DNA of 64,000 nt from Macrostomum lignano. Its lineage: Eukaryota. Positions 18,462 to 62,877 of the stretch are shown one piece after another. Position 1 is the stretch's first letter; each line of letters opens with the position of its first letter. A program made the translations under genes and the position numbers. The notes beneath the pieces were generated by a model, which had not been told where the DNA came from, did no database searches, and was given only the letters and a program-made list of their open reading frames with translations. The stretch spans positions 1,178,001 through 1,242,000 of the forward strand of contig NIVC01000040.1 of the NCBI GenBank assembly GCA_002269645.1. Reading direction: 5' to 3'.

Positions 18462-18531
<70 letters not shown>

Positions 18532-29050: not shown

Positions 29051-29570
29051 AGTTGCTAAGATGTCAAGGCCAAGAATCAATGAGAGACTTAGGGAGGAGC
29101 CACGGCCAAAAGGGGGCTTTGATGCCAAAGCTCAGAGGGGGTGCTGATATCTCCGGCTTGATAGCCTGGCTTTCAGGGCGGATAATTTTTTGCTTAAAAC
29201 ATTTTTTAAACATAGAACTGCCTTATTTCGTTAGCTGCATGCACAGTTATTTTTAAAAAATTATTCCTTTTGGTTGCCACCACCCCCCTCCCCCCCCAAC
29301 ACGGGGGGCAGAGTGCCATTCTGAAACTTTAGGCGAAAATATCAAACAGATGGCAATATTTGCGGAGAAAAAAGTATCGAAATTTAACTCAACTCAACTA
29401 TCGCTAAAAATTCAAGAATAAAGTTTCTGGAATTCACTTTCAAAGGAATGCGCCACGTGGCGCAGCCAAGCGATCCCGGAACCTCAGCATAAAATGGTTC
29501 AGCAAATGCCCAAAACAGCCAACCAAAGTCAGGCCCGACCTGTTCAACATTCACTCTGCAGGCATTCAGC

Positions 29571-29637
29571 ATGCGGCTTCTTCTGTTCGTTTCGGTCTTC
29601 ATTCTGGCAGCTTCCGGCACCTCCGGGTCTAAGCTGG
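29571..29637 (+). CDS. Signal-peptide exon of gene B ([22 protein letters not shown])
   Basis: ATG, Arg, hydrophobic core, small residues, then G|GTGAGT phase-1 donor that joins the first microexon in frame. Not in the ORF track because of its size. Confidence 0.78.
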
Positions 29638-32600
29638 GTGAGTTTGAGCTGCGTCTCACCTGAGCTGGGAGAGTTTGAGATGCGTCTCACCTGAGCTGGG
29701 AGAGTTTGAGATGCGTCTCACCTGAGCTGGGTGAGTTTGAGATGCGCCTCACCTGAGCTGGGTGAGTTAGAGACGCGCCTCATCTGAGCTGGGTGAGTTT
29801 GAGTTGCGCCTGCACTGAGTTTCAGCTATTTGATAGCTGCATGTTAAAATGGTCCACTCAACCGGCCTCTCGGACAGAATTTCGATTTCACTAAGTCTTG
29901 AGCACTTTACTGAAGTTGCCATTTTTAACTGCTGCTGTGTATATTGGAGTACTGGAGTATTTAATGGATGTCAAGGCATGGAAATTGCTGCATCCACAGG
30001 GGGGGCTGGGTTGGAGCGCCACAGAGATAGGTATTTCTACACCGGCCTCAGACAGAATTAAATGCAATTTAAACAAGTGCTGACCACTTTACCAAGCCGA
30101 CCCTGCTATCATTGGTTTCGGGTAAGGATTCGATCATGGCTTGAGGGAAGCTGCTGACATGTCGAGGCTCAGAGGTGAAATATTTTTCTTAAATAATGAT
30201 TCTGCGTGTAATCATAACCGATTATATTTCTGTCTCTTGTTTCAGAGCACCCGAACTGTAAGTTCAGAATCTGCTCACCGATATAATTTGCTATATAATG
30301 AGCAGTTCGCTATTTTATTATTTGCTTATGTTTAATTGTTTGCAAAAAATTTCAGTTAAACTGCACGGTTGTTACCTTCGTCGTGGAAGCGGTGCGAATC
30401 TAAAATTCAGCGTATCAAGCAGCGAGCCAATGACAATCGAGAGCTGCCAAAAGGACTGCAGTCGTTATACCTTTCGCTACTTTGGAGTCGCAGATGGAAC
30501 ATATTGCTTCTGTGGCAATACAAAACCTTATCCGAAAGTTCCCTTATTCAGATGCGATCAAAAGTGTCCGGGAAATTACTATCAGATTTGCGGTGGTTCT
30601 AACTCGATGGTTGTGTACGAGCAGCCCGCTACACTCGCTACAGCCTCTGCCGGTAAGTGTGCCACAATTTATTATGTTCAATCGTTCATTTCTACATATA
30701 GCTCTGAATGGTCTCGTTTCCTCTTGTATATCTGGACTGCTGGCATCTCAAATTGTGGACATATATCTATGTATTATATGTATTATATGTATTATATATA
30801 TGTATACTCGTATATATCTATCGATGCAGAATTTAATACGCAGCAAATAGACTATTTGAATGTTGAAAATTAATAAATTCAGCTGCCTATTTTACAGTAG
30901 CAGAAAACACTTATTATACTTTTTATGCCATTTTTTTCTGCTTTGAGCTGAAAATTTGCATTTTGAGTGATAATAATTGTATCTTTAAAAATAAATATAT
31001 GCAATTTTATTTCTCTTTTTTTGCAGAGCATCCCAACCGTAAGTTCAAAATCAGTCCACAAATAAATGTTACTTTATGGTGTTTGAACTGCAAACACTTT
31101 ATCCAATCTTTTGAATGATCGGTAAATTTACATTTCTGTTGTCCCATAAATTTGCGAGCCACGCAAACCGCGAAATCTTCCATGTATGCCAGCAACCTTA
31201 TAGTATGTGGCATATATTTTATACTTTAAAATTGATTTAGAAATATCGAGACTTACAAAACTAGATATGTACTAGCAATCTACGCCCCCCGTTGGGGAGC
31301 CAAAGAAATGCAATACACGTTTTTTTTAATAAGCTACATGTAGCCTTGAAATCTTAAAAAATCTCATGTCAAACTTCGAACCCAAACCCTAACCCTAACC
31401 AAAACCCTAAATTCAATATTTTGTCCATGAGTTTTTGCATGATCGATGCTTCTATGATTTTTGGCATGACGCTTCCATTGCTTTTGCATGATGCTTCCAT
31501 GATAAACATTTTTAATAAGCTACATGAGCTAAGTTATAAGCTACCCTAACCCTAACCCTAACCCGAATCTTAACGCAATAACCCTGAACCTAACCCTAAA
31601 CCTAAACCCTAATACCAACCCTAACACTAACCCTACAGCCTGACATCTGCATAAGTTTGTGAAGCGCTAGTAGTATTTTTTAGCTTAGTATCTTAGCGTT
31701 AGGGAGCCAAAATGCAGTACAAGTTTTGTAATAAACTACATGTAGCATCTCTTTGCAATATACCTCAGAAGTCCCTTGTAAGCCTTGAAATGTCAGTAAT
31801 TCCCCCCCCCCCCAAGCTTTAACAAATCAACTCCCCCCCCCTTGACATCTCAGCAATACCCCCAAGACTTGACATCTCAGCATTCCTAAGCCTTGAAATC
31901 TCAGCAGTCCCCCAAAAATTGACATCTGCCTAATTCCCCGAAGCCTACACATCTCAACAATCTCCTAAGACTTAACATCTCAGTAATTCCCCCAAGCCTA
32001 CACATCTCAGCATTCAGCAATACCCCTAAGACTTGACATCACAGCATTTTTAAGCCTTGAAATCTCAGCATTCTTAAGCCTTGAAATCTCAGCAATCCCC
32101 CAAGACTTGAAATCTCCCTAATTCCCCGAAGCCTACACATCTCAGCATTTAGCAATACCCCAAGACTTGACATCTCAGTAATTCCCCCAAGACTACACAT
32201 CTCAGCATTCAGCAATACCCCTAGACTTGACATCTCAGTAATTCCCCAAGCCTACACATCTCAGCAATACACCCAAGACTTGACATCTCCCTAATTCCCT
32301 GAAGCATACACATCTCAGCAATCCCCCCAAGACTTGACATCTCAGTAATTCCCCCAAGACTACACATCTCAGCATTCAGCAATACCCCTAGACTTGACAT
32401 CTCAGTAATTCCCTAAGCCTACACATCTCAGCAATACCCCCAAGACTTGACATCTCTCTAATTCCCTGAAGCCTACACATCTCAGCATTTAGCAATACCC
32501 CTAGACTTGACATCTCAGTCAAAAATAATATTCAGCTTATGTGTAGATTATTGCTATGAGATTCATGAGGAGCTACTATGAGATTATTTGAAAGCTACTA

Positions 32601-35600
32601 TGAGATTATTTAAAAGCTGCCTGAAAAAAATAATATTACAGAGCTGCTATGAGATTATTGCTATGAGATTATTGCTGTGAGATTATTGCAAAGCTGCTAT
32701 GAAATTATTGCTATGAAATTATTGCGAACCTCCACGAGATTATTGCTATGAGATAATTGCTATGAGATACTTGCTATAAATTTTTTGCAAAGCTGCTATG
32801 AGAATATTGAAAAGCTGCTATGAGAATATTGCTATGAGATTTTTGCAGAAATGCTATGCAATTATTGCTATGAGATTAGTGCAAAGCTGCTATGAGATTA
32901 TTGCTATGAGATTATTGCTATGAGATTATTGCAAAGCTGCTATGCGATTATTGCTATGAGAATATTGTAATGAGGTTATAGCATCAACACTCCATGAGAT
33001 TATTGAAGACCTGCTCTACGATTATTGCTATGAGATTATTGCTATGAGATTATTTGTATGAGATCATTGCAAAGCTGCTATGAGATTATTGCTAAGCTGC
33101 TTTAGGAATATTTTTTTATCTTTTTTTATCTGACGCTTTTTAAAGATATTTTTAGATTTCTTGTCGTTAAAAATTTTTTAAAAAAAACTTCTAGACACTC
33201 AAAAATTCGAACCCACGCCGCTGCATTTACAGTCCAGTCTGTTCACCTCTAGGCTAGCTCTCATTCATTTGATAACATGAATTTTGTAACTTATATATAA
33301 ATTCAACACTTTCAACACTCCGAGCATAGCAGTTATGACATAATCTATTTCTTAGGCAGCCTGTATCAGTTTCAATTGAAGTCAACAATATAGTTACGCA
33401 ATATAAATCTAGCTAGTCTCGTGCAATGCTTCTACGTGGAGTTACAATTCAGCTGCGACGCAATCTATTGCAGAATCAGCATTCAACCAGTCAGTTTTTT
33501 CTCTAGCATTTTTACAATGCTTTTCAAGACTAAAGAGCTGCTTGACCTTTGCAAAAAAGCATGTTTTTCGAATATTTAATGCCTTTAGCATCGAACAATT
33601 TCTTAGCCAAGATGCATGTACCGAGACGCGAAAATTTGAGATCGAATGGTGCAAGTTTGAAGAAAATCGGACAACGCATTCGCCTAAACGACGAGAAGAC
33701 GGCTATTTTACATGGCACCAATTGACATATATATATACATATATACATATATATAGTTTTCATTTTTAGTATATCTGACTAGCATACCAATTCCCCCTTT
33801 GGGGGAAGAATACCAACGCTTCTAATATCTTAAGAAATAAAGAACTATTAAATCGATATCCCCCTATTCAATATACTACGCCAAATAACTCTTGCTATCC
33901 TCTTATCACGCTATGTTTTAACCTAGATATCCGCTATATTATTCCTTATACCAAGCCTAAATAACTCTTGCTATCTCTTTGATATCTTTAGCTATCTCTT
34001 GGAAATCCCCTGCTACCCATTGACATCTCTAGCCATCCTATCGATATCTGTAGCTATCTCTTGCAATTTTCCATTGATATCCCATGCTATATGACATGCT
34101 ATTTTATCGACACCCCTTGAAAAATCTAATCACATGCAAACTGCTGGAACTCTCACGATATACCAGAAAATCTCAAACTATACCCTGGAAACGCTTTATC
34201 CTGAACTTCCTATTTACTAAAAATGAAAATCTTCTTTTCTAGAGATCACCTCGACATTTCATGCTTTACCTATAAATCTAGAACACATCATTTCGTTTCC
34301 TCAGTATGTCATGCTATTTTCTTTAAAATCGTCCTACCTGCTAGATACTTTTTGCTATCCTCTCGATAAACCATGTCGTCCCCTCGACAATTTATGCGAC
34401 TCCTTTTACAATAAATCATGATCTCCCCTTGACACTCAGTAATTCCCCCAAGCCTACACATCTCAGAATTCAGCAATCCCCCAAGCCTTGACTTCTCAGG
34501 AATTTCTCCCCAAGCCTTGACATCTCAGCAGTGCCCTAATGCTTGACATCTCAGAAATTCTCCCAAGCCTACAAATCTCAGCATTCAGCAATCCTCCAAG
34601 ACTTGACATCTCAGAAACTCCCCCAAGCCTACAAATCTCAGCATTCAACAATACTCCAAGACTTGACATCTCAATAATTCCCCCGAGCCTTCACATCTCA
34701 GCAGTCCCCCAAGCCTTAACATCTCAGAAATTCCCCCAAGCCTACACATCTCAGCATTCAGCAATCCTCCAAGCCTTGACATCTCAAAAATCCCCCCAAG
34801 CCTTCACATATAAGAAATACCCCAAGACATGAAATCTTAGTAATTCCCCCAAGCCTACACATCTCAGCATTCAGCAATCCTCCAAGACTTGTCTTCTCAG
34901 AAATTCCCCCAAGCCTTCACATCTTAGCAGTCCCCAAGACTTGATATCTCAGTAATTCCCCCAAGCCTTCACATCTTAGCAGCTATGAGACTATTGCTAT
35001 GAGATTATACAGAAGCTGCTATGAGATTATTGCTATGAGATTATTATTGCTAAGCTGCTATAAGATTACTGCTATGAGATTACTGCAAAGCTGCTATAAG
35101 ATTATTGCTATGAGATTATTGCAAAGCTACTATGAGATTATTGCTAGGAGATTATTGCAAAACTGCTATGAGATTATTGTTATCAGATTATTGCAAAGCT
35201 GCTATGAGATTATTGCTATGAGATTATTGCAAAGCTACTTTGAGATTATTTCTATGAGTTTATTGCGAAGCTGCTATGAGATTATTGCTATGACATTATT
35301 GCAAAGCTGCTATGAGATTATTGCTATGACATTATTGCAAAGCTGCTATGAGATTATTGCTATAAGATTATTGCGAAGCTGCTATGAGATTATTGCAAAG
35401 CTTTTGTGAGATTATTGCTATGAGATTATTGAGAAGCTGCTATGAGATTATTGCAAAGCTGCTATGAGATTATTATTGCTAAGCTGCTATGAGATTATTG
35501 CTATGAGATTATTGCGAAGCTGCTATGAGATTATTGCAAAGGTGCTATGAGGTTATTGCTATGAGATTATTGCAAAGCTACTATGAGATTATTGCTATGA

Positions 35601-38600
35601 GATTATTGCAAAGCTGCTATGAGATTATTGCTATTAGATTATTGCAAAGCTGCTATGAGATTATTGCTATGAGATTATTGCTATGAGATTATTATTGCAA
35701 AGCTGATATGAGATTATTGCAAAGATGCTGTGAGAATATCGCAAAGCTGCTATAAGATTATTGCTATGAGATTATTATTGCAAAGCTGCAATGAGATTAT
35801 TGCAAAGCTGCTATGAGATTATTGCAATGAGATTATTATTGCTAAGCTGCTATGAGATTATTGCTATGAGATTATACAGAAGCTGCTATGAGATTTTTGT
35901 TATGAGATTATTATTGCTAAGCTGCTATGAGATTATTGCTATGAGTTTATTGCGAAGCTGCTATAAGATTACTGCTATGAGATTACTGCAAAGCTGCTAT
36001 AAGATTATTGCTATGAGATTATTGCAAAGCTACTATGAGATTATTGCTAGGAGATTATTGCAAAACTGCTATGAGATTATTGTTATCAGATTATTGCAAA
36101 GCTGCTATGAGATTATTGCTATGAGATTATTGCAAAAATGCTATGAGATTATTGCTATGAGATTATTGCGAAGCTGCTATGAGATTATTGCTATAAGATT
36201 ATTGCGAAGCTGCTATGAGATTATTGCAAAGCTTTTGTGAGGTTATTGCTATGAGATTATTGAGAAGCTGCTATGAGATTATTGCAAAGCTGCTATGAGA
36301 TTATTGCTATGAGATTATTGAGAAGCTGCTATGAGATTATTGCAAAGCTGCTATGAGATTATTGCTATGAGATTATTATTGCTAAGCTGCTATGAGATGA
36401 TTGCTATGAGATTATTGCGAAGCTGCTATGAGATTATTGCTATGAGATTATAGAGGAGCTGCTATGAGATTATTTCAAGGCTGCTATGAGATTAAAGAGG
36501 AGCTGCTATGTGATTCTTGCAAAGGTGCTATGAGGTTATTGCTATGAGATTATTGCAAAGCTACTATGAGATTATTGCTATGAAATTATTGCAAAGCTAC
36601 TATGAGATTATTGCTATGAGATTATTGCAAAGCTGCTATGAGAATATTGCTATGAGATTTTTGCAAAGCTGCTATGAGATTGTTGCTATGAGATTATTGC
36701 AAAGATGCGGTGAGAATATCGCAAAGCTGCTATGAGATTATTGCTAAGCTACTATGAGATTAATGAAGAGCTTATTTGAGATAATTTTTTGTTTACATGA
36801 CGCGTCTTTTTTTATCTGACACTTTTTAAAGTTTTCTTAATTAAATTTCGTACGATAAAAAAGTAAATATTGAATACTTGTAAATTAAATAAATAAATTG
36901 GATAAATTTAAATATGTAAAAAACTTCTAGACACTCAAAAATTCGAACCCACGCCGCTGCATTTACAGTCCAGTCTGTTCACCTCTAGGCTAGCTCTCAT
37001 TCATTTGATAACATGAATTTTGTAACTTATATATAAATTCAACACTTTCAACACTCCGAGCATAGCAGTTATGACATAATCTATTTCTTAGGCAGCCTGT
37101 ATCAGTTTCAATTGAAGTCAACAATATAGTTACGCAATATAAATCTAGCTAGTCTCGTGCAATGCTTCTACGTGGAGTTACAATTCAGCTGCGACGCAAT
37201 CTATTGCAGAATCAGCATTCAACCAGTCAGTTTTTTCTCTAGCATTTTTACAATGCTTTTCAAGACTAAAGAGCTGCTGAAGAGTTGATTCGGGAGGTGA
37301 TCAGTCTCCCGAAAACTCCCACTTCCAGACACTTAAGCCTGGGAACAAAATAAAGTGATCACTTACTGTTGCGGGCTCCTCTTCTGTGTAGTGCAGGTTC
37401 TCCGAGCTCGTTTCTTCAAATCTTCTTCTTCTCCGGAGGAATCTTCTTGAAGTCTCGAATCGGCCGAATGAGAGCGTGACGATCAAATCAGGCGACGTCG
37501 CAGTATTTCTCGAATGCAAATCAATATAGGCCTTAAGCTCAGTAATCAATATCAACGATGCGCCCTTGTAATAAAATCAACTTTCTGTAATAATCACGAG
37601 GACCTCCAAGAGGGGCGTCTTCTTCTAGATCTAACGGAATCGGAGTCGTGTGCTCCTATCGGTTAATCTAGGATAACCAAAATCAATCAATCGATAATCC
37701 TCTAAGGGTATCGGAATCGGTCCGCAGATCCTATCCGATCCCTTAGGAAAATGGGAGGCCTCAAATTCAATGAACTCAGTCCAAACGACTGGACAGTAGC
37801 GGCCGGCAATAAATCGCTCTCAAAATCAATAACAAAGGCTCTAACCAGAGCTTACCGAACGGTAGGTATTTCCTCAGAGATATAGCCTCGCTTAGCTGCT
37901 CCAGCAAGCTTCAAGATCTTCAGAGGGTGCTCCGAGTCCCAAGATCTTTTGAGGCTGCTCCGAGTCCCAAGATCTTTTGAGGCTGCTCCGAGTCTGAGAT
38001 TTTTAGCTCGGATTTTGGCTTGTATTTATAGGAAAAATTCTTGAGAAACAGCTTATTTTTAGTAGGTGACAGTTTAGCGCTTTGGAAATTTGGCCCCTAT
38101 GGAATACATTAGGTTTGAGCGTCAATATCATATTCGGAGTTCTAAATTTAAGTGTTGCAAAAGATGGTCATTTGTTGCTTTCGTGGTCTTTAAAAATAGA
38201 GTGTGACAATTTGCAGTTTTTACAACATTCAAGTTTTTCGCATTTTTATGTTGCTACTTACAGTAGTCTGCTTGTAATGCCTCTGGAGATCTCTACACTG
38301 CTTGACCTTTGCAGAAAACACATTTTTTTGGAATATTTAATGCCTTTAGTATCGAGCAATTTCTTAGCCAAGATGCATGTACCGAGCCGCAAAAATGTCT
38401 GATCGAATGGTGCAAATTTGAAGAAAATCGGACAACTCATTCGCCTAAACGACGAGAAGATGGCTATTTTACATGGCACCAATTGACATATATATATATA
38501 TATATATATAGTTTTCATTTTTAGTATATCTGACTAGCCATTTAGCCCCCCGCTGGGGGGCTTTAAAATGACACCAAGTGGTTTTTATTTTGGCGCAACA

Positions 38601-47600: not shown

Positions 47601-50600
47601 TCGTTACCTCCGGGAGTCCTTGACTTTTATCTGTAGGTCGACCAAAGACGAGAGCGAATCAGAATTCCTTGACGGTCCTCGAGCTCGGAATTAACAATAG
47701 AACGCCCTAATGAACAATCGAATTCTCTAAGAACGTAAATGCTTACAAATTGGACAAGTGTGGTCCCTCAGAGATTGGTCTTCTTCTTTGTTCCTTCGGA
47801 GTCTTCTTAGAGACCGCTCTGAGTCTGAATTTTTGACTCGGATTTTCACTTATATTTATAGCAAAATTTTGGAGAAAAAACGGTTTGGGATCGGATATTT
47901 ACTTGGGTCATTCATGTTTGATTAAGCTTTCACGTATGCTTGAGCATTACCATATATGGGGTTAAGCAAATACAGCTGTTGGAATCCGGTTCCTTGATCA
48001 AACAATGTTGGTCTCACGTGGGGTTCTTAATCACTCTGTTAACGCGTGATTCCTAAAAATAGATATGACTCATTCTAGAATAAATTGACTTTCTTAGAAT
48101 ATTACTTTAAGTAGGGCATCACGGTATGGTTCCGGCTCTCTACAAGGTTCCAGCAGGCCCCAGCCCCCCAGCCAGTGTAAAGGCGCCAGGTCGGGTTGAC
48201 AGCCAACGCCAGAGCCCTTCCCCAAAGGAGCGGTCATTTAGAACCCGTGTGGCACCAGCACTAGCCACCTGCCCTGCAAAAGGCTGCAGGGGGTCCGCCC
48301 TCCATAGCAGGGGACAAGAACGAAGAAGCTCCAAAAAAATGAAGAGCTGGCAGATGTCACGGAGTCCCGCGGTTTAAGTTGCCATTGCAAATATACTTGA
48401 TGCAAGGTAAAAAATAAAAAGTTCAACTAATGTCATTTGTGAGTAGTTACAACTTTGGGCTTATAAAATGAGAAAACAGTATAAAAATAAAACTTTCACG
48501 ACAACTACCGGTATACATGCTTTAAAAACAACAGCTAGGCACGCATGCTAAGTAAAAAAATGGTAATCTTCGCTGCCCTAGATCAAATGTAATCAATATT
48601 TTTGTGATTAAAAGTGATTTATTCCTATTTTTTATGAAATTGGCACAAAAAACAGGAGCTTTGATTTTACATCCTGTTTTACTACTGTGGTCCTTGGGTG
48701 GAGCTCAGCTACGCAGGACTGGGGGTGGGTCTACACCACGCCCTCAGCAACTGTACAAGGCGTTTTACATGTATTCTTTATTCAAAGAATTCGTTATAAT
48801 CCCTTGCTTTGTTGTCTCCCAACGAGATGCAAAGATTGCTATAGTACGAGCGTATGTAATCCAATAAAACAAAATGATCAGCAGGAAGGACATCAGGAAA
48901 AAACAAAACAAATACGGCCGTCAGATCGAAGGTGTATTTCCTGAATACAGTATGCACGTATCAATAAAGAATCAACCTCATCTCATATCCACTAAAATGA
49001 ACGCAAAACTCAATAAAAATGTTTCGTGACGCTCGATCGTTCGATGTTGGCCTTTTGCCATAAGGTTTTAGTCAAAATGATTGCAGTGCATTGCAACCAG
49101 ATCGGAATCCGAGACGTAAAGTCACATCTTGATGGTAGATAACCCACCGGCACCTGTTTACATAGCAACCTACTTAGAAGCTCCATTAATATAAAAAGAG
49201 TCAAAGAACTCTAACGACCTCGCCGACATAAAGCGCAATTCCACCAAGTCTTGAGCTTGAGCACCTTACTGAGCTCAGTAGCCAGCCTGCTATCGGCATG
49301 CATGCCAAACTCTGATGTAGCATTTATTGATTTTTAATTTTCACACGAGTAAACTGTTGTCTCTTGTTGCAGAGCACCCGAACTGTAAGTTCATCATCAA
49401 TCCACACTTGTAACTATAATTTATTTGTGGTATTTAAGTACAAACGCTTTACTCAAGCTTTTGAATGTTCGATAAATCTACACTGGTGTTGGGACAATGG
49501 CAGAAACGGATCTCGCTCTCACTCCTATATTGACCCAATGAGCGTAGAGCAAGAGCTCAAGGTACCTTCGGTCCTCTGGCCGGACCCACTTCCAACTCTG
49601 AGCGGAAGATCGCGTCTTCGTTGGGATCGACGCGTCCCCAGGCAGACACAGTACAGTACGAATCTTCAGCCTTCTAAGAAATAACGCAGCTCACTCAACA
49701 TACTCTTGGATTCCACGAGTCCGACAGGCAAGCGAGCGACGGGCTTGGTTGCACGGAGCGCTGAGTAGTATCGTAGTTGACTGACTCAGCTGAGTGAGCT
49801 CTCGATCGTCTGAGTTTATCTAAGTATCTGAGTCTGAGTAGACTCTGCGCACCCTTATGCCGTCAACCTCCACTTAAAAATCATACAAATATTGTGCACT
49901 GCTTCACCCTTGGTGCACCGACCCCGACTACAACTGACAATGCGATTAGCGACTGTAGCTCCCTTTTACTTTACTTGTCCATGAGTTTGAGCATAAGCAG
50001 TGCTCTTTTTTATTTGCATTACAATTTCAGTTAAACTGCAAGGTTGCTACGTTCACGTCTATAAGGAAGTTGAGAATCTAAAATACCGCATATCAACCAG
50101 TGAGTCAATGACAATTGAGAGCTGCCAAAAGGACTGCAGTCGTTATACCTTCCGCTACTTTGGAGTCGCTACAACAGAATGCTTCTGCGGTGATTCAAAA
50201 ATTGCTAACAAAATATCTTTGAACAGATGTAATTACAGGTGTCCGGGAAACCCAAAGCAGATTTGCGGTGGTATTAACTCGATGGTTGTGTACGAGCAGC
50301 CCGCTACACTTGTTACAGCCTCTGCCGGTAAGAATGCCCTAATTTATTACGTTCAATTGTTCATTTATGAATGGTGTCATTGTCTCATTTCCTCGCTCGC
50401 TTATAGAGCGTAGTCTCTAGCTCACTCCTCGTCGGATTCTTAGTAAAAGAAAAAAGTGGAAGAAATTGTCGTCGACTTTATTCTTATCTATTGCAGAGAG
50501 TATGTTGTCTGACAGGTGAAACTAACAATCTCCTTTCACGTACAGACGCTTCCCGTCAATAACTTTGCTACTTCCGAGATCGTAATCTGTGCAGTTAGTG

Positions 50601-53600
50601 CACAGAAATTTCATTGGGTGCCATTGTACTGAACTAAAAACTGCTTCTGAGCAGCTGCAAGTTTGACAGTGGATGCGAAAACGAGGCTCGTTTGGGTAAA
50701 AAATAACCCACTTTCAGCACTGCCTTGTCGACGTGTGTTTATACCCGGTAGTATTTACTGTTTGCCGAATTTCGATAAAGAATTGATAAAGATTTCGATA
50801 ACAAATTGCTAGCCTTTTGCGCTCAAGGCCAGCCGAAGTTTTATCATCTCACTTGCGACAAGTGACGACCTGAAAGCCGTCGTTTTTAGACACACCCAAC
50901 AGTGGGGTTGGAGACCGAGGTGCGAGGGTTTCTGCTGGGTTTGCGGTGAGGTCAACCTTCATGTTGAAGGGTTGGGGGATTGACGGACCCCCAGCCGCGT
51001 GAAGTTTCGGCTCCTGAGCTGTTTTTGTACGCTTTATTTATCTATGAAGCGTAGGCTGGAATAAAGAAGCTAAGATCTAGAAAATGGGGCGGTTAACCGT
51101 GCGGGGGTGGATATACCTCCAGCAAGCTCCGGAGAATCCATCATGCAGCTGCTTTCGCTGCTTGTGCTATCCTTTTGTTTTTCAAACTCTTCAAGGACAT
51201 TGATTGTGAAGTCGGTCATAAGATCCTCTATTTTAAAACTCTGGTTCAATGACTTGGGTGTATTCAGTTTCAATGGCTTGAGCAAAATGATCAGCAGGAA
51301 GGACATCGGGAAAAACAAAACAAATACGGCCGTCAGATCGAAGGTGTTTTTCCTGAATACAGTATGCATGTACCAATAAAGAATCAACCTCATCTCATAT
51401 CCATAAAGCGCAATTCCACCAAGTCTTGAGCTTGAGCACCTTACTGAGCTCAGTAGCCAGCCTGCTATCGGCATGCATGCGAAACTCTGACGTAGCATTT
51501 ATTGATTTTTAATTTTCACACGAGTAAACTGTTTTCTCTTGTTGCAGAGCACCCGAACTGTAAGTTCCTCATCAATCCACGCTTGTTATTATAATTTTTT
51601 TGTGGTATTTAAGTGCAAACGCTTTACTCGAGCTTTTGAAAGTTCGGTAAATCTACACTGGTGTTGGGACAATGGCAGAAACGGATCTCGCTCTCACTCC
51701 TAAATTGACCCAATGAGCGTCAGAGCACGAGCTCAAGGTACCTTCGGTCCTCTGGCCGGACCCACTTCCAACTCTGAGCGGAAGATCGCGTCTTCGTTTG
51801 AATCGACCCGTCCCCAGGCAGACACAGTACAGTACGAATCTCCAGCCCTCTAAGAAATAACGCAGCTCACTCAACATGCTCTTGGATTCCACGAGTCCGA
51901 CAGGCAAGCGAGCGACGGGCTTGGTTGCACGGAGCGCTGAGTAGTATCGTAGTTGACTGACTCAGCTGAGTGAGCGTCTGAGTTTATCTGAGTATCTGAG
52001 TCTGAGTAGACTCTGCGCACCACCCATGTTATCAACCTCAACACACAAATCATACAAATATTGTGCACTGCTTCACCCTTGGGTGCACCGACCCCGACTA
52101 CAACTGACAATGCGACTAGCGACTGTAGCGCCCTTCTACTTTACTTCTTTATGAGTTGTAGCAGTAGCAATTCGCTTTCTTATTCGCATTACAATTTCAG
52201 TTAAACTGCAAGGTTGCTACGTTCACCTCAATAATGAAGATGAGAATTTAAAATACCGCATATCAACCAGCGAGTCAATGACAATTGAGAGCTGCCAAAA
52301 GGACTGCAGTCGCTATACTTATCGCTACTTTGGAGTCGCAAATAAAACAGAATGCTATTGCGGGGATTCACTAAGAAAAGAGCAAACTTCAAACGAATGT
52401 AATTACAGGTGTCCAGGAAATCTAAAGCAGATTTGCGGTGGTTCTGAGTACATGGTGGTGTACGAGCAGCCGGATATACTTCCTGCAGCCTCTGCTGGTG
52501 AGAATATTATAATTAATGGTCGTTGTTAGTGGTCTTGAACTCAAAGTCTTTTTTACGATTTTGTATGTCTCCATATACGTTTGAGTCTGAAGCAATCTGG
52601 AGCTAATCATGCACGTGCAGAGCAGTTGGCATTCACCAGGTGCTTGCCAAGTTACGTGGGTCTACTTGTAGAAAGCATAGGGCAGTCGTCGAAGCTTTAA
52701 AGTACGGAATACTCTGTAGTGCGCTTGTGGCCTCAGAAATAGCAGAGTTTCTCGGGCCGTATAACTGAGTTTCTATGCTCGCACGAGCGTATAGATTGAT
52801 GGCCGAAGCGCGGCTACACGTGTTACGCAGAGGCGGATCGATGAGATGCCAAAGTTTAACTGAGAGTTGCTAGTAGACCAATTAATCATTAAATAGAGAG
52901 TACGAGTAACGGTAAGGCCATGGCTTAAGGGAATTGCTGAGATACCGAGACTCAGAGGCGGATGCTGATGCTGGGTATGGGCGGATGCTGGGTAGACAGC
53001 TGGCTTTGAAGCGTTTGGCTTTGAACATCTCTTTCTTTAGAAATCTTAAAGAAGCGAGTATGTAATCTTACGAAGTCTTCTACACTTATTTTTTGGTTTA
53101 AATATTTTTCCCTCAACTGGGGCAATGATTGATTGCATTCGCAGAAAATGTTGTAGGGCCTCTGGGTCATTCCACAATTTCCATAGTATACTTGAGCTCT
53201 GGAACCAAACTATTTTTTACGAGTAACATTGAGCTTTCACGTGAATAACCGATCGTTCCGGTAGCGTACACTGCCCGAGCGGCAAGACACTGTTGTTGAC
53301 TATACTTTATGGCATTGAGTGCTGAGTGGCGTTGTCAATGGATCGAGGTTTTCCTGTTTTTCTCTTCCCCATATTCCTCTTGTCGGGATTGACTTATGTC
53401 AGTTTACGACCAGTCATTGGTGGATTCAATTTCGAAAGGAATTTTGGAATATTTTCTTCCTATAACTTAGCGAATAACGCGTCTTCACTTCTCTTGCTGT
53501 TTCGCAATCTGTTCCTTAGACTACGTATTCGCTTGCACAAACTGGTTCCCTCAACCAGCCGACGAGCAATCTTTTCACAATTTTGGCAAATGAGAAAGAT

Positions 53601-56374
53601 TCTTTGAACACTTGAATCGGTTATTTGATCCTTATCTGAGAGACTGTGCGGTTCACCGATCCTCTGATATTCCTCAATTGAGACTCCTCTGTATTTATAG
53701 TCAAGAGTGAGATGGGGTGAAGCGCGTTTAAACAAATCGGCTTTTATTATCATTCTGGCGAGAATTTAAATGAAGGAGCTGCTAACAAAAAATAGCAACA
53801 TCAATAATACAGTACTAAATACGCTGACAGATTAAAGAGATGAAGATCATACACGTATCGAGAAGCAATGGGCCTCATCTTCAGATTCAAATTCACACGA
53901 AGCTCAACATAAAAGTTTTGTGCCGTTTATTCGACTGAATAAAGCCTTTAGTCTGGAGTTTTTAGTCGAAACCGACAGTCGAATTGCAGTTTCACCAAGT
54001 CTTAGCACTTTACATGGAGCAGTAGCCAAACCTGCTATTGACAAATATTCAAACTACGACGTAGCTTTTACTGATTTTCCATTTTCAATTTTCAAACTGC
54101 TTTCTCCTCTTTCTCCTGTTGCAGAGCACCAGAACTGTAAGTTCATCATCAACCCACCAATATATGCTTATAATTTCTTTGTGGTATTTAAAGTGCCAAC
54201 GCTGCACTCAACTTTTTGAATGTTCGGTAAATTTACACTGGTGTTGGGACAATGACAGAAAATGATCTCACTCTCACTCCTAAATTAATCCAATTAATCT
54301 TGGAGCACGAGCTCAAGGTAGCTTCGGTCGTCTGGCCGGACCCACTTCGAACTCTGAGTGGAAGATCGCGTCTTCGTTGGGATCGACACGTCTCCAGGCA
54401 GACACAATACAGTACGAGTCTCCAGCCTGAAGTGTTAGTGGTGATCAGTGACTCGAAAATTCCCACTTCTAGACACTGGGGAACAAGTGCCACGAGGTGT
54501 ATGCAAAATCAAATAACTCTTACTGCAGCGGATCCTTTAGTAGCTTTTAGACGTCTTGGTTTGGCTTAGGTGACTCGTTACCTCCGGGAGTCCTTGACTT
54601 TTATCTGTGGGTCGACCAAAACCGAGAGCGAATCAGAATTTTTTGACGGTCCTCGAGCTCGGAATTAACAATAGAACGTGCGCCCTAATGAACAATTGAA
54701 TTCTCTGAATAACTGTATTAGGTCCTCCTGAAGGGCGTCTTATTCGCTACATCTGAAACGTAACGGATAACTCAAATCAAATCAATAATCCTCTAGGAAT
54801 ATATCCCAGGAAACAAGGAGGCCTTTCTCAAATGTATCGACAATGAACTGCTCTCGTATAACTCAATTAATCAACTTGTTATCACTAACAATCAAAGAAC
54901 TGAATCCTGTAAACGCTTACCAATTGGACAAGTGTGGTCCCTCAGAGATTGGTCTTCTTCTTTGTTCCTTCAGAGTCTTCTTAAAGACCGCTCTGAGTCT
55001 GAACTTTTTACTCAGATTTTCACTTATATTTATAGCAAAATTTTGGAGAAAAACCGGTTTAGGATCGGATACTTACTTACTCCAATTATGTTTGATTAAG
55101 CTGTCATGTATGTTTGATCATTACCATTATATGTGGTAAAGCAAATACAGCTGTTGGAAACCGGTTCCTTGATATAAAATGTTGGTCCCATGTGGGGTTC
55201 TGAATCACTCTGGTTGCGCATGATTCCTAAAAATAGATATGACTCATTCTAGAATAAATTGACTTTCTTTGAAGAATAATTTTAGTAGGGCATTACGGTA
55301 TGGTCTAATAAGTCTCTACAAGCCCTCTAAGAAATAACGCAGCTCACTCAACACACTCTTGGTCTCTTGCTCTCACTCAACAACCACAACACACAAATCA
55401 TATAAATATTGTGCACTGTTTCATCCTTGGGTACACCGATCCCGACTACAACTGGCAATGTGATTAGCGCCCTTTCACTTTACTTGTCCATGAGTTTGTT
55501 TAATTGTTTTGCATGAAAACCTTTCAGTTAAACTGGAAGGCTGCTACTTTCATTACGACGATCCGAGTTCCAACCTACGCCGCTACAAGTCATCCAACGA
55601 GTCCATGACAATCGAGAGCTGCCAAAAGGACTGCAGTGTCACTACTGATCGCTACTTTGGAGTAATAAGTGGAACGCATTGCTACTGCGGTGATTTAATT
55701 ATGAGTGCACAATTGTCTTTGAAAAAGTGTGATTACAGGTGTCCGGGAAATCCAAAGCAGATCTGCGGTGGTTCTATTACAATGGTTGTGTACGAGCAGC
55801 CCGCCTCTGCTGGTGAGTATAATCTATAAATCAATGTTCACTCTCATTTAATTATCGAATTCAATTTATTCAAACTTGGGTTTTCAGGATTTTTTTATAA
55901 TTCGTGCTCCGTCTCCGTATGGTTTTGTGCCTGAAGCAGTGAATGAAGGTTTGCAGGGAAGTTGCTGAGATGCCAATGCTGACGAGAGGATTTCTGAGAT
56001 AATAATGCTTTACTGGGAGTTGCTACTAGGCCTATAAATAATAACAATAATAATTTATTACACCTGCCCTAATGGACATGTGTGCAACCGACTGCTCAGC
56101 CGCAGTTATTGCGCGGTGCATCTGATAGCTGTGTATGGCTGTTCAATCCAAGGACTGGACTGGGGGGTCACGCACACACTCTTAATTACCCAAGCTATAA
56201 ATGCTGGCACTCATTTTACAGCTGGGTGAACTGAAGCAATGCAGTGAAGCAATGAATTATCTTGCTCAAGGACACAAATTGTTCTGACTTGCTCGAGAAT
56301 CGAACCCCCGACCTTCAAGTCATGAGTCCGACGCTTTAACTACTAGGCTACAACCCCATGTAGGCCAAGCATCA

Positions 56375-56405
<31 letters not shown>

Positions 56406-58551
56406 TAAGGCAATGCTTAAGGAGGGAGTTGCTGAGACGCCGAGTCAAACCTTTATTTTTCATTTTTTGTTGTCTCCCAACTGGGACAAACCTTGCTAGT
56501 AATATTGAAGAAAAGCAACACCAACAGCAAGCAACATCAATGACAGCAAGAGCCACAGCAACGCCGAAGACGAATCTAATCGTCTACGCGGATGACCTCA
56601 ACCGCGTCCGCCTCGTCCCCAAACAGCATTTCTCTCGAAGAAAAGCTCAACGACTACCTAGCCGAACTTTCTCCTTCCCTCGAGTCGCATAAATTGCAGA
56701 TTTCAGCCTCGAAATGTACCGCCACCCATTTAGCCCGGGCAAGAGCAGGTACTCGCGGCAACTACGTCTCTACATGTACATCAACGGCACACAACTCCTG
56801 CCAGCGCTACACTAAAAATTCTGAGTGTCACGTTCGACCCCCAGCTGTCTTTCTCGAGACATGTCTCTAACCTAGCGGAGAAAGTAAGGAAGAGAGCCAG
56901 CATTCTGCACTGACTTACCGGCTTTGTTTTAAGCCGCTGTAAAGAATTGCTCTCCAGACTGTCCAGAATGCGGCAACCGCTGCATTAACGGCCGCACTGC
57001 TCTAACATCCGAAGCCGATCTTCATTGTGAAGTTCTGTTGCTCCCATCCGCCAGCACAACTGCCTCCTGTCGCTGCAGTTCAAGCTCCCAATCAGGTGTC
57101 CTGAGCATCCGTGCCACCACTTGTCAGCTCTACCTCCAACGCGGAGGCTCATGAAGGCCTCTATTTCACGGCGGAACATTGCAACGCAGACTGGTCACCG
57201 GTACCAAATACGTCAACTAAATATATATTTCCTGAATATATATTTCCTAAATAACGCATATACCCAGCCAGAAGGAATGAGCATAATCTTTAGGAATCAA
57301 ACTTCACGCCAAGCGCAACTGAAAAGTTTTGTGTTGTTTTTTTGACTGCCTGTTGGTGTTTTGTCTGAAGTTTTAACAATGTTGGCATTTATCATTGTTG
57401 GGAGTTAATTCACTTGCACCTCCTTAAAAACAACCTACTGATAACTCCACTAATGTAAAAATACTCTTCAACCACTCAAACAGCCTCTTAGATTGAAATT
57501 TCGATTTCACCATGTCTTGAACATATGTAGGACGACATATGTAGGACATGTATACAAAATCCTGAAGTAGGCATTGTTGATTTTCAATTTTAAAGCGACT
57601 AAATTGCTGCCTCTTGTTGCAGAGCACCCGAACTGTAAGTTCATCCTCAATCCACCAATATATACGAGTAGCTATAATTTCCTTCGTTGTATTTATAGTG
57701 CAAACGCTTTATTTAACCTTCTGAATGTTTGGTAAAGGGGTTGGTGTGGGGACAATGGCCGAAACGGATCTCACTCTCACTCCTAAATTGAACCAATGTC
57801 TTCTGGCCGGACCCACTTTGAACTCTGAGCAGAAGATCGCGTCTTCGTTGGGATCGACCCGTCCCCAGGCAGACACAGTACAGTACGATTCTCCAGCCCT
57901 CTAAGAAATAACGCAGTTCACTCAACATACTCCTGGATTCCACGAGTCCGACAGGCAAGCGAGCGACGGGCTTGGTTGCACGGAGCGCTGAGTAGTATCG
58001 TAGTTGACTGACTCAGCTGAGTGAGCTCTCGATCGTCTGAGTTTATCTGAGTATCTGAGTCTGAGTAGACTCTGCACACCACCCATGCCATCAACCTCAA
58101 GAAACAAATGATATAAATATTGCACACTGCTTCACCCTTGGTGCACCGATCCCGACTACAACTGACGATGCGATTAGCGCCCTTTCACTTTACTTGTTCA
58201 TGAGATTAAGCATGAGCAGTTTGTTAATTTGTTGTTCGCTAAATGTTTAATTAGTTTGCATAAAAAATTTCAGTTAAACTGCAAGGTTGCTACTTACATT
58301 CCAAAAAGCAGAATAACCTACGCCTCTACATATCATCCAGCGAGTCAATGACAATCGAGAGCTGCCGAAAGGACTGCAGTGTCACTACTACTCCTTACTT
58401 TGGAGTAATAAGTGGAACATATTGCTACTGCGGTGATTCAATAATGGGGACGCAATTGTCATTAAGAAAATGTGATTACAGGTGTCCGGGAAATCCAGAG
58501 CAGATCTGCGGTGGTTTTGACTCGATGGTAGTGTACGAGCAGCTTTTATGA
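29571..58551 (+). CDS. Gene B: secreted protein with six tandem WSC domains, predicted 630 aa
   Basis: join(29571-29637,30246-30257,30356-30652,31027-31038,42963-43262,49373-49384,50031-50327,51548-51559,52201-52497,54125-54136,55528-55812,57623-57634,58274-58551) = 1893 nt, in frame, all GT-AG phase 1. No transmembrane segment or catalytic domain recognised. Confidence 0.82.
29633..29820. repeat. 31-bp tandem repeat (about 6 copies) containing the exon-1 splice donor
   Basis: GAGCTGGG(T/A)GAGTTTGAGATGCGTCTCACCT units. Confidence 0.9.
30246..30257 (+). CDS. 12-nt microexon, gene B
   Basis: tgtttcag|AGCACCCGAACT|gtaagt. Confidence 0.85.
30356..30652 (+). CDS. WSC domain exon B1 (297 nt)
   Basis: [33 protein letters not shown]; gtaagt donor. 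Confidence 0.92.
31027..31038 (+). CDS. 12-nt microexon (divergent codons, still E-H-P-N), gene B
   Basis: tttttgcag|AGCATCCCAACC|gtaagt; two synonymous changes relative to the other copies. Confidence 0.8.
31378..31636. repeat. Degenerate telomere-like (CCCTAA)n patches, interstitial
   Basis: ACCCTAACCCTAACCC runs at 31378-31410 and 31542-31636. Confidence 0.8.
31790..33105. repeat. Compound satellite: CCCCAAG(A/C)CTTGACATCTCAG array followed by GCTATGAGATTATT array
   Basis: Degenerate short-period repeats; type switches near 32530. Confidence 0.9.
33197..33263 (-). pseudogene. tRNA-Tyr-like SINE head or tRNA pseudogene (second copy at 36934-36999)
   Basis: A-box TAGCCTAGAGG, CTGTAAA loop, B-box GGTTCGAAT then TTTTT; no acceptor stem. 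Confidence 0.6.
33590..33785 (+). mobile_element. End of a Helentron/HINE-like non-autonomous element (related ends at 38350-38538 and 41520-41745)
   Basis: GGTGCAAGTTTGAAGAAAATCGG, a (CATA/TA)n tract, TTTTCATTTTTAGTATAT and a following short GC hairpin. Family assignment is by resemblance only. Confidence 0.4.
34430..36780. repeat. Second, larger compound satellite block (same two repeat types)
   Basis: CTTGACATCTCAG array 34430-34980, then GCTATGAGATTATT array 34980-36780. Confidence 0.92.
37278..38297 (-). mobile_element. Solo-LTR-like element, TGAAG...CTCTACA family, 1020 bp, TSD CTGC
   Basis: CTGC flanks both ends; empty site GAGCTGCTTGACC near 33537. Confidence 0.8.
38840..39176. repeat. 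Two-copy tandem duplication, period about 176 bp
   Basis: CCTTTGACCCCCCTCTTTATTAGCC...GACGATCGGACAATC occurs twice. Confidence 0.9.
39200..40790. repeat. CTTGACATCTCAG-type arrays plus two imperfect 0.5-0.7 kb repeats
   Basis: 39530-40030 resembles 40220-40790. Confidence 0.7.
41042..41116 (-). pseudogene. Degenerate tRNA-like sequence
   Basis: Minus strand GGCGGAATAGCC...GGTTCGAGTCTGCC with A/B-box-like motifs; anticodon arm does not fold. Confidence 0.35.
41760..41862. mobile_element. 103-bp foldback MITE, PIF/Harbinger-like ends (GGGCC...GGCCC), 3-bp TSD AGA
   Basis: About 40-bp imperfect inverted repeats; AGA on both sides. Confidence 0.7.
42213..42752. mobile_element. 540-bp solo-LTR-like insertion TGTGACG...CGTCACA
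   Basis: 7-bp inverted ends; interrupts the conserved intron motif GTCTGA|GTAGACTCTG; imperfect TSD CTGA/CTAA. Confidence 0.65.
42963..43262 (+). CDS. WSC domain exon B2 (300 nt)
   Basis: WSC pattern with an extra Cys (ECCCG); canonical splice sites. Confidence 0.92.
44200..45120 (-). pseudogene. Degenerate non-LTR (R1-like) ORF2 fragment
   Basis: [22 protein letters not shown] and [14 protein letters not shown] motifs in broken frames. Confidence 0.55.
45123..45424 (+). mobile_element. Candidate LTR (TGTGATG...ATTACA) followed by PBS-like TGGTGTTCGATGCCC
   Basis: TG/CA ends, internal TATAAATA, TGG immediately downstream; no second LTR found. Confidence 0.4.
46044..47054 (-). pseudogene. 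gag: Gypsy-like gag remnant
   Basis: 336-aa ORF with [13 protein letters not shown] gag-like segment and a truncated knuckle CYTCGRIGH; C-terminal part uncertain. Confidence 0.6.
47452..48144 (-). mobile_element. Shorter solo-LTR-like copy of the TGAAG...CTCTACA family
   Basis: Homologous to 54428-55320; contains the empty GTTAC site; TSD not intact. Confidence 0.7.
49373..49384 (+). CDS. 12-nt microexon, gene B
   Basis: ttgttgcag|AGCACCCGAACT|gtaagt. Confidence 0.85.
50031..50327 (+). CDS. WSC domain exon B3 (297 nt)
   Basis: 8-Cys WSC pattern; one amino acid differs from A1 (N vs H). Confidence 0.92.
51548..51559 (+). CDS. 12-nt microexon, gene B
   Basis: gttgcag|AGCACCCGAACT|gtaagt. 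Confidence 0.85.
52201..52497 (+). CDS. WSC domain exon B4 (297 nt)
   Basis: Same translation as A2. Confidence 0.92.
54125..54136 (+). CDS. 12-nt microexon (E-H-Q-N), gene B
   Basis: gttgcag|AGCACCAGAACT|gtaagt. Confidence 0.85.
54428..55320 (-). mobile_element. Solo-LTR-like element, 893 bp, TSD AGCC, without the nested insert
   Basis: TGAAG...CTCTACA; AGCC on both sides. Confidence 0.8.
55528..55812 (+). CDS. WSC domain exon B5 (285 nt)
   Basis: Same translation as A3. Confidence 0.92.
56035..56357 (-). mobile_element. tRNA-derived CORE-type SINE (paralogue of 18126-18450)
   Basis: Same A/B boxes, CORE-like block and tail. Confidence 0.75.
56530..57180 (+). pseudogene. Degenerate non-LTR RT fragment (paralogue of 18545-19200)
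   Basis: LIVYADDL. Confidence 0.75.
57623..57634 (+). CDS. 12-nt microexon, gene B
   Basis: ttgttgcag|AGCACCCGAACT|gtaagt. Confidence 0.85.
58274..58551 (+). CDS. Terminal WSC domain exon B6 (ends MVVYEQLL-stop)
   Basis: Open to TGA at 58549-58551; AATAAA at 58631-58636. Confidence 0.9.
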
Positions 58552-59095
58552 GGCCTGATTTATTATTTATCAGAGAAGTAACTAACTTTGAAAGACACAT
58601 CATTGAAAAACATGATGATTCTGATTAACAAATAAACGCGATCTTTAAACATTGTCCGTAGTGTCCGTGTTCTCTCAAACAATATATACTTCTTAAGTAC
58701 CGCACTGACGCAGAAAGTTTTGCTGTTAAAAGTGCTGCAGCAGAGCCTCATATGTGTAAATATGTGGTCACAGCTTCATATTCTAGTGTAGCGCACAGAC
58801 TTCAGCAGCTGGGTGGAGGAGGGTGTGGTGTTGCAACGGCCTTCGGGCGGTCTGTGAACAACCGGAAGAAGCTATGAAGTACTGGGAGTGGTGGAGAGGT
58901 CACCCGCCGTGGGGGGGCCAGGGAGGAGGCCCCTAGCCGTGGATGAAAGGTGGTTGGCAACAACAACAACTGCAGCAGATGTGACGAAGCGAGTGACGAA
59001 AATTGACGAGAGAAAGAGACCGGTGTGATTGACCGCCGACACCGACTCCGAAGACGAGACCGACAGCCCGAGTAAAGAGACGTCAAGCGAAGAGT

Positions 59096-59308
59096 TGAGA
59101 GGCCGGCAGACGGGAGGCCATAAGAGGCTGGCAGACAGGAGGCCATGAGAGGCCGGCAGACGGGAGGCCATGAGAGGCCAGCAGACGGGAGGCCATGAGA
59201 GGCCGGCAGACGGGAGGCCATGAGAGGTCGGCAGACGGGAGGCCATGAGAGGCCAGCAGACGGGAGGCCATGAGAGGCCAGCAGACGGGAGGCCATGAGA
59301 GGTCGGCG
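59096..59308. repeat. 25-bp minisatellite, about 8 copies
   Basis: Same unit as 23530-24190. Confidence 0.95.
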
Positions 59309-59870: not shown

Positions 59871-60578
59871 ATCAATTTTACCCTGATTGACTTTAAAACT
59901 TGACTGGCTTTTTCGCTTTGCTCGGCGTATTTACGTGTGCATGTTGACTGAAATATGCTACTTGCTTAGCTTCTGAATCAGCCAGTAGTATCTGGGGAGC
60001 ATCAATGGATCTGATTTTGTATAACTAATTTTAAGGCAAATTAGCAATCTTAACCGACACCGGGGAGGCACCAAATAAGCAAATAATTTTGTTGCTCTCT
60101 TCCGCGCAGAATGCCTAACAGACCAGCCGTCTTTGATTCTGTAGTGCCAATCAGCTGGTATATCAGCGTCTCCTTGGCATCTCAGCGACTGTAAACATAA
60201 CATAATTCCAATCTTAGCTTTCCCCTTGAGCATCATAGCTCTTGGACTACTGATGTGAAAGGTTTGAGCAAAAGCAGGCCTTCACCGTCCAGAATTTATT
60301 TTGCTCAAAGTGACCAAATGTCAACGGAGCAAGAAAATCATGAAAAAGAAGAAGAAGCGGTGAAAAATCGCCCAAGAGCTTCGCAATTCTACCGATCGAG
60401 GTGACCAGTGGAAAGTCGAGGTTGAAAGCCGCATGCAGCCATTCCTTAAGCGCTGTATGCACCCAATTGACCCCAATATATTTTGTAAAATTTGATGCAC
60501 CACAATGTATTCGCACATTTCGCAACACAACCTTATTTTTACAGTTATTTCCACATTCCCAATTTATATCTAAGCCAA

Positions 60579-62792: not shown

Positions 62793-62877
<85 letters not shown>

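Follow-up and report, generated by a model that had tools for sequence, protein, structure and literature searches.

A six-cassette WSC gene of Macrostomum lignano as a probable seminal-fluid protein gene

The stretch of DNA analysed here (the window) comprises 64,000 nucleotides (nt) of the flatworm Macrostomum lignano, positions 1,178,001-1,242,000 of contig NIVC01000040.1 in assembly GCA_002269645.1, and all coordinates below are positions within it. Its bases 1-32771 agree at 100% with the deposited scaffold, and a second deposited locus matches it through base 64000. On its plus strand lies a 13-exon gene for a signal peptide followed by six WSC domains, and upstream of it most of a tandem paralogue with five. 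Published primers for three prostate-limited transcripts of the species, Mlig-pro46, Mlig-pro49 and Mlig-pro63, match the six-cassette gene exactly, and the gene probably encodes a protein of the ejaculate.

The cassette gene, its product and its tandem paralogue

In a six-frame motif scan, the plus strand of the window yielded ten WSC-like exons, six of them belonging to the gene in question (at 30.4, 43.0, 50.1, 52.3, 55.6 and 58.4 kb) and four lying upstream of it (at 10.7, 12.9, 17.7 and 22.6 kb). The gene model, rebuilt base by base, runs in 13 exons from 29571 to 58551 and has a coding sequence (CDS) of 1893 nt for 630 amino acids (aa): a signal-peptide exon, then six WSC exons or cassettes (W1 to W6), each preceded by a micro-exon of 12 nt (Table 1). 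The internal exons measure 12, 297, 12, 300, 12, 297, 12, 297, 12, 285 and 12 nt, each divisible by 3, and every junction is in phase 1. This reproduces what the initial annotation had read at the locus, namely a signal-peptide exon and six WSC exons with uniform phase 1 and a 630-aa product; its join of 29637 to 30246 holds as well, micro-exon 2 being required by the exactly matching GenBank protein PAA92802.1. Every intron is of the GT-AG type and has a good polypyrimidine tract. The donor of exon 1 is G/GTGAGT (a slash marks the splice junction), each WSC exon has the acceptor TTTCAG/TTAAACTG, and all but the last have a GTAAG or GTGAG donor. The micro-exons are AGCACCCGAACT or a close variant with strong, near-identical splice sites (TTGCAG/.../GTAAGTTC); they encode EHPN or EHQN, part of the short linkers that join the WSC domains. 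Being duplicates of one unit, the cassettes have inherited their uniform phase, which is not a matter of twelve independent coincidences. Exon shuffling classically acts on phase-1 symmetric exons that carry one extracellular domain apiece, and the symmetry of the cassettes is ordinary, since such exons are standard for shuffled extracellular modules.

Table 1. Coordinates of features of the six-cassette gene, its introns and the tandem paralogue
Feature	Position	Strand	Remarks
TATA-like CATAAAAT	29488-29495	+	Sequence inspection; ~35-40 nt upstream of 29529, first base of the deposited transcript-based CDS
Exon 1	29529-29637	+	5' leader 29529-29570; signal-peptide coding part 29571-29637, 22 residues and 1 extra nt
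31-nt tandem repeat, 5.7 copies	29632-29808	+	Overlaps the final 6 nt of exon 1
Micro-exon 2, AGCACCCGAACT, EHPN	30246-30257	+	Needed by the deposited protein
Exon 3, cassette W1, 297 nt	30356-30652	+	Mlig-pro46 forward primer, 30361-30380
Micro-exon 4, AGCATCCCAACC	31027-31038	+	
Exon 5, cassette W2, 300 nt	42963-43262	+	Second Mlig-pro46 reverse primer, 42982-43005
Micro-exon 6	49373-49384	+	
Best-conserved stretch of the intron upstream of W3	49861-49975	+	-170 to -55 from the acceptor
Equivalent stretches	~42757-42932, 52031-52145, 55381-55498, 58089-58203	+	
Exon 7, cassette W3	50031-50327	+	Mlig-pro63 reverse primer, 50280-50299
Micro-exon 8	51548-51559	+	
Exon 9, cassette W4	52201-52497	+	
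Micro-exon 10, AGCACCAGAACT, EHQN	54125-54136	+	
Exon 11, cassette W5	55528-55812	+	Mlig-pro46 reverse primer, 55659-55682
Micro-exon 12	57623-57634	+	
Exon 13, cassette W6	58274-58551	+	TGA stop 58549-58551; Mlig-pro49 primers, 58280-58302 and 58513-58534
AATAAA polyadenylation signal, presumed in use	58631-58636	+	80 nt past the stop; sequence inspection
Paralogue, 3' four cassettes	9945-22771	+	GenBank PAA92801.1
Paralogue micro-exons	starts 9945, 12121, 14698, 21849	+	
Paralogue WSC exons	10604-10900, 12773-13069, 17629-17913, 22494-22771	+	

The TATA-like sequence is a putative promoter element. With the stop codon in exon 13 and the AATAAA signal after it, and with neither a further gene called nor a third tandem copy within 10 kb downstream, the expectation that no later exon adds a transmembrane or enzyme domain is borne out. 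When preceded by SGPTCSTFTLQAFS, the 630-aa product is an exact match to PAA92802.1 (644 aa, "hypothetical protein BOX15_Mlig011622g1, partial"), the gene of which spans 29529-58551. The extra 14 residues are the 5' leader translated in frame, which suggests that this entry was not predicted ab initio but is an open reading frame (ORF) called from a transcript. Neither the six-cassette gene, deposited in this form, nor its protein family is new. An older-assembly prediction in UniProt, A0A1I8G5V8, clusters with the six-cassette gene; it omits the micro-exons and stays in frame. The entry, in which the beginning of W5 is joined to the final part of W6, is probably a mis-prediction and, as a prediction, gives no evidence of an isoform.

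The product matches the Pfam family WSC (PF01822) in six stretches, at 301.9 bits against a cutoff of 27.8 (E = 8.6e-92), in keeping with the domains first assigned to it. Eight cysteines are present in every cassette. W2 has a ninth, reading CCCG in place of the CFCG or CYCG of the other cassettes, and is longer by one inserted residue (GGIFDGM). For cassette 3, an AlphaFold model has a predicted local distance difference test (pLDDT) score of 85.9 and superposes on the WSC domain of Kremen1 with a template modelling (TM) score of 0.80-0.82 and a root-mean-square deviation of 1.4-1.6 A, and on yeast Wsc1 with a TM score of 0.78; a sequence search of the PDB returns the same relatives. Each domain is thus modelled as a WSC/PAN-like fold of the Kremen/Wsc1 type. 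By inspection and hydropathy, the signal peptide has n-, h- and c-regions, and the hydropathy peak of 1.62 is confined to residues 1-19. No transmembrane segment was found in the remainder of the protein, where the best 19-residue hydropathy is at most 1.0. The protein is secreted and soluble, and consists of WSC domains only.

The paralogue directly upstream, which the initial annotation had also noticed, is PAA92801.1 (BOX15_Mlig021499g1, with five WSC domains in 535 aa): the model derived by the same splice rules, micro-exons included, translates exactly to this entry. Its signal-peptide exon lies ~36 kb before the start of the window. In its first cassette the acceptor of the micro-exon has been lost, and the signal-peptide exon joins the WSC exon directly (...AEL/VKLQG...). 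W1 and its micro-exon occur only in the six-cassette copy and are absent both from the paralogue and from the 36 kb examined upstream of the window; the paralogue carries a first intron of 25 kb and a 14-kb insertion. The promoter, signal-peptide exon and 31-nt intronic repeat are 93% identical between the copies (over 29318-29819), and the last four cassettes are 96.9-99.7% identical, introns included, with the 99.7% identity spanning ~6 kb. This unevenness along the duplication suggests gene conversion.

At the level of single cassettes, W4 and W5 are identical between the paralogues. The last cassettes (58274-58548 and 22494-22768) differ by 6.5 nonsynonymous and 0.5 synonymous changes, numbers too small for a test, while W2 and its positional counterpart show a nonsynonymous rate (dN) about equal to the synonymous rate (dS), with 14.2 nonsynonymous and 3.8 synonymous differences. 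The duplicated block runs past the 3' ends of both genes, where 59958-60592 and 25279-25998 hold the same minus-strand ORFs with the same flanks; the duplication unit is thus larger than the gene.

Identity of 99.7% over ~6 kb, in a species whose assemblies are repeat-rich, might point to paralogues or cassettes duplicated in assembly, or to a decaying pseudogene array. Such an artefact is extremely improbable. The structural differences between the copies argue against it, W1 being confined to one and the 14-kb insertion and 25-kb intron to the other, as does the range of identity from 96.9% to 99.7%. In addition, all 13 exons are open, the splice sites are intact, every domain keeps its eight cysteines, and primers derived from cDNA match exactly.

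Correspondence with prostate-limited transcripts

The transcripts Mlig-pro1 to Mlig-pro76 were defined as prostate-limited through in situ hybridisation (Weber et al., 2018; PMC5977470). WSC domains are prominent in transcripts of this animal's prostate gland: RNA815_80.4 is reported to carry two of them (PMC4490696), and among the tail-specific and socially plastic transcripts in Table S1 of Weber et al. (2018), many, including RNA815_16008.x, 38600.x and 39357, have WSC-domain proteins as their best match (PMC5977470). Mlig-pro46 is homologous to WSCD2, like several other seminal fluid protein (SFP) candidates, and its knock-down lowered offensive paternity share (P2), an effect that was not significant after multiple-test correction (PMC6953679). 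Knock-down of Mlig-pro63 lowers the propensity of partners to suck, in a preprint that treats this transcript as independent of Mlig-pro46 (bioRxiv 10.1101/734301). The same preprint contradicts an equation of Mlig-pro46 and Mlig-pro63 with "suckless-1" and "suckless-2" (bioRxiv 10.1101/734301).

The link between these transcripts and the locus was tested through the published primers for RNA interference (RNAi) and the lengths of their amplicons (PMC6953679; bioRxiv 10.1101/734301). Seven published primers match the six-cassette gene without a mismatch, and for two of the three amplicons the length agrees with that published. Both Mlig-pro49 primers fall in exon 13 and span 255 nt (58280 to 58534), the published length. 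Those of Mlig-pro63 span 370 nt (49930 to 50299), again as published, and also have exact copies at two cassettes of the paralogue. The forward primer of Mlig-pro46 has a single match in the window, in W1, and its reverse primers match in W5 and, for the second of them at its only exact site, in W2 (Table 1). Because the primers of the prostate-limited Mlig-pro46, Mlig-pro49 and Mlig-pro63 match exactly, the six-cassette gene, or near-identical copies of it, would encode a prostate-secreted seminal-fluid protein.

Several observations weigh against this conclusion. The identifiers attached to the primers in the published table are Mlig021499.g3,.g4,.g8 and.g10, not Mlig011622.g1, and near-identical loci elsewhere in the duplicated genome could be the true sources of the primers. 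Expression in the prostate comes from published in situ hybridisation of transcripts and is not locus-specific, and the published RNAi effects are small and not significant after correction. Finally, the six-cassette model predicts a Mlig-pro46 amplicon of 1389 nt, where 771 nt was published. The latter length is given by W1 (292 nt) + 12 + W2 (300 nt) + 12 + W5 (155 nt), the sole combination that fits, and its source would be either an mRNA that skips cassettes 3 and 4 or a four-cassette paralogue. An origin of the 771-nt amplicon as a k-mer collapse artefact was considered unlikely, as the junction regions share at most 14 exact bases, against a collapse at k = 25. A choice among cassettes by Dscam-like selector and docking sequences was likewise rejected: within 29-59 kb the best complementarity scores 22 while the maximum of the shuffled null is 26, and neither a conserved RNA fold nor a compensatory pair was found.

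Cassette number varies, from six in PAA92802.1 and five in the paralogue to the four implied by the 771-nt amplicon, and in this respect, as in the symmetric cassettes, the tandem paralogue and the secreted WSC-only product, the initial annotation stands. It went further in proposing a variable family of lectins serving pattern recognition, mucus or symbiosis, with a repertoire generated by skipping, duplicating or swapping of symmetric cassettes. A protein that is secreted and composed of WSC domains only, a cassette number of 6, 5 or, by implication, 4 depending on copy or form, and the excess of exon over intron divergence described below would all suit such lectins. What speaks against them is the exact identity of primers with prostate-limited transcripts; nor was any sign of immune, epidermal or gut expression met in the sequence or in the literature read. 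Phase-1 symmetric exons, general among shuffled modules, are no mark of a diversity-generating system, and a cassette-skipped mRNA is hinted at once, indirectly. The proposal is quite improbable, and the lectin role, lacking support of its own, is probably wrong; an ejaculate protein is more likely than an immune or mucus lectin.

The double-stranded RNAs (dsRNAs) used for Mlig-pro46, Mlig-pro49 and Mlig-pro63 have tens to hundreds of exact 21-mers in common with exons of the six-cassette mRNA, and all except that of Mlig-pro49 also share exact 21-mers with several exons of the paralogue; the Mlig-pro49 dsRNA targets mainly the last cassette of each gene. Given these shared 21-mers and one transcription unit, cross-silencing and co-variation of expression are to be expected.

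Divergence of exons and introns

In comparisons of W3, W4 and W6, conservation of the whole intron from micro-exon to WSC exon exceeds that of the exon about twofold. Mismatches amount to 6.6-12.6% in the intron and 15.3-25% in the exon, with divergence (K) of 0.07-0.14 and 0.17-0.30, respectively (Fisher p from 5e-5 to 1e-6), and third codon positions are 72% identical as against 86% for the intron. Between cassettes dN/dS is 0.4-0.9. Variable positions cluster at residues 7-22 and 55-66 in each cassette, and residues 11-20 coincide with the low-confidence part of the AlphaFold model. Two pairs depart from the pattern: for W5 and W6 the difference between exon and intron is not significant, and for W2 and W3 the exon is far more alike than the intron, suggesting recent exon conversion. 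Exons that diverge faster than introns are known from abalone lysin, the phospholipases A2 (PLA2) of snake venom and conotoxins, and are typical of reproductive proteins that evolve fast. The pattern fits a fast-diverging reproductive protein together with homogenisation of introns, or with constraint on them. Homogenisation of the introns by gene conversion is an equally good explanation, as the cassettes compared lie within one gene. The dN/dS values stay below 1. Of the "diversifying" system proposed at first, a weaker, evolutionary sense is thus supported: exons outpace introns, and the variation lies in two segments per domain.

Within these introns a stretch of 115 nt is best conserved, with an identity of 0.70-0.89 upstream of all five internal WSC exons. 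The forward primer of Mlig-pro63 (49930-49950) lies inside it, in intron 6, 101 nt ahead of the acceptor of exon 7, and the motif TATAAATA or TACAAATA occurs ~45-55 nt upstream of the primer site. Either an intron-retaining RNA or an internal start of transcription would explain this intronic primer. The second possibility can be extended to internal promoters in the conserved stretches, with Mlig-pro63 and Mlig-pro49 as separate, nested transcription units that yield short transcripts of a single cassette. In its favour, the genomic span of the Mlig-pro63 primers equals the published amplicon, so that the transcript contains "intron" sequence; the primer sits in the stretch conserved before all five internal WSC exons; and the transcripts RNA815_39357 and RNA815_38600.1 reach only 513 and 522 nt. 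However, an in-frame stop lies just upstream, and there is neither a consistent ATG nor a signal peptide, so that RNAs initiated in the stretch would not encode secreted WSC proteins. Likeness to the real promoter is limited to one 11-mer, conservation extends beyond the stretch to the whole intron, and the deposited transcript-based models join all cassettes. Contigs with retained introns are, moreover, common for highly expressed genes. Internal promoters of this kind are accordingly unlikely.

Other candidates for the conserved stretch were set aside. The 11-mer TGAGTTTGAGC is all that it has in common with the real 5' end of the gene (z ~2.7-2.9, reached by 3-6 of 300 shuffles), and the W5 and W6 stretches share nothing with the real promoter or signal-peptide exon; descent from a fossil promoter and signal-peptide exon was left unproven. 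A small RNA hosted by the intron was rejected, as Rfam gave no family at gathering score anywhere in the window and canonical C/D boxes were not found in the stretch by eye. So was a dispersed transposable element, the conserved intron being found only within WSC units across the ~110 kb examined, with short ORFs that have no Pfam match.

The remaining observations concern repeats. The 31-nt tandem repeat at the end of exon 1 reiterates the exon-1 donor GCTGG/GTGAGT in intron 1, with GTGAGT in some copies and GAGAGT in others; the next intact donor, if used, meets an in-frame TGA. The array is ~3 times longer in the paralogue (10098-10613 of the fetched upstream locus). On the minus strand of intron 5, 46044-47054 holds a 336-aa ORF with a weak CCHC zinc-knuckle match (E = 0.0065, below the Pfam cutoff), which looks like the remnant of a retroelement gag; a truncated copy with the same C-terminal ~70 residues lies on the minus strand of intron 7 (51070-51498). 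Intron 4 (11.9 kb) consists mostly of complex, degenerate tandem repeats (31841-36762 and 39225-39518) with periods of 27, 36, 60, 72 and 113 nt. Satellites were found between the paralogues (27362-29050, 28 copies of a 60-nt unit), inside the paralogue (6135-8111, 5.8 copies of a 339-nt unit), directly downstream of both genes (23529-24190 and 59096-59307, a 25-nt unit) and at 24685-25255 (28.5 copies of a 20-nt unit); the long ORFs on both their strands are repeat artefacts. An AG/GA microsatellite of 94 copies at 62744-62930 likewise produces Glu/Arg-rich and Ser/Leu-rich pseudo-ORFs.

A role in the ejaculate and comparison with known systems

Taken together, one 13-exon gene with a tandem five-cassette paralogue and a secreted six-WSC product is probably a gene for an ejaculate protein. 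A cleavable signal peptide would direct the soluble six-WSC protein out of the prostate gland and into the ejaculate, where, to judge from the domain family, the multivalent WSC array may bind glycans on sperm, on other ejaculate components or in the female antrum. Such binding could underlie the small knock-down effects on P2 and on the sucking behaviour of partners, none of them robust. The gene would have been enlarged by tandem duplication of a unit of ~1 kb (micro-exon, intron and WSC exon), all in phase 1, which kept the reading frame and let cassette number change between copies; the exons, chiefly two segments per domain, would then have diverged faster than the introns. A bolder version, in which diversifying selection from sexual conflict acts on the cassettes while conversion or function keeps the introns alike, and in which forms of four to six cassettes and transcripts initiated in the conserved stretch make up a small repertoire of ejaculate lectins, with Mlig-pro46, Mlig-pro49 and Mlig-pro63 as products of one locus, is more doubtful and can be put forward only tentatively.

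To the annotation of the genome this analysis adds nothing, the model having been deposited already. It goes beyond the searchable literature in mapping Mlig-pro46, Mlig-pro49 and Mlig-pro63 onto one gene and its tandem paralogue, in the fit of the 771-nt amplicon, in the conservation of the introns and in the intronic position of a Mlig-pro63 primer. Quantitative-genetic and RNAi studies have handled as distinct three candidates that fall within one gene and its tandem copy; a shared locus would explain covariance in their expression and complicates an independent reading of the knock-down phenotypes.

The closest known counterparts are Mlig-pro46 (with Mlig-pro37), Mlig-pro49 and Mlig-pro63 themselves, from the same species and genome assembly, whose WSC homology was noted by the authors; their exon architecture is not described in the searchable literature. 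Kremen1 (PDB 5FWS), yeast Wsc1 (7PZ2) and fungal oxidases (9N3U) share the Pfam family, the eight-cysteine framework and the fold (TM 0.78-0.82) at 22-28% identity, but carry one or a few WSC domains on a receptor, sensor or enzyme, whereas the M. lignano protein has six and is soluble. A like architecture is seen in a secreted protein of a lophotrochozoan, the oyster Saccostrea: LOC134282767 combines a signal peptide with four WSC repeats in tandem, WSC being its only firm Pfam domain, at 34% identity to the M. lignano protein. Each oyster repeat is recovered in two tblastn blocks, which suggests two exons per repeat in place of the single WSC exon of M. lignano. With this WSC-only protein, and with the many WSC transcripts of the M. 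lignano prostate, the statement of the initial annotation that WSC domains of animals usually occur within receptors or enzymes proves too strong.

The micro-exon genes (MEGs) of schistosomes are similar in belonging to flatworms, in encoding secreted proteins and in having symmetric micro-exons, multiples of 3 that can be skipped with the frame kept. In MEGs, defined by having most of the CDS in symmetric micro-exons of at most 36 nt, these exons make up the bulk of the coding sequence, whereas in the six-cassette gene they account for 72 of 1893 nt (3.8%) and code for invariant linkers, which places it outside that class. The comparison with abalone lysin, snake-venom PLA2 and conotoxins differs in that the M. 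lignano values are between cassettes within one gene; the likeness lies in secreted, disulfide-rich proteins whose exons have diverged about twice as much as their introns. With this pattern and its 12-nt linker micro-exons, the six-cassette gene offers a concrete locus at which to examine whether ejaculate proteins evolve rapidly in a hermaphrodite.

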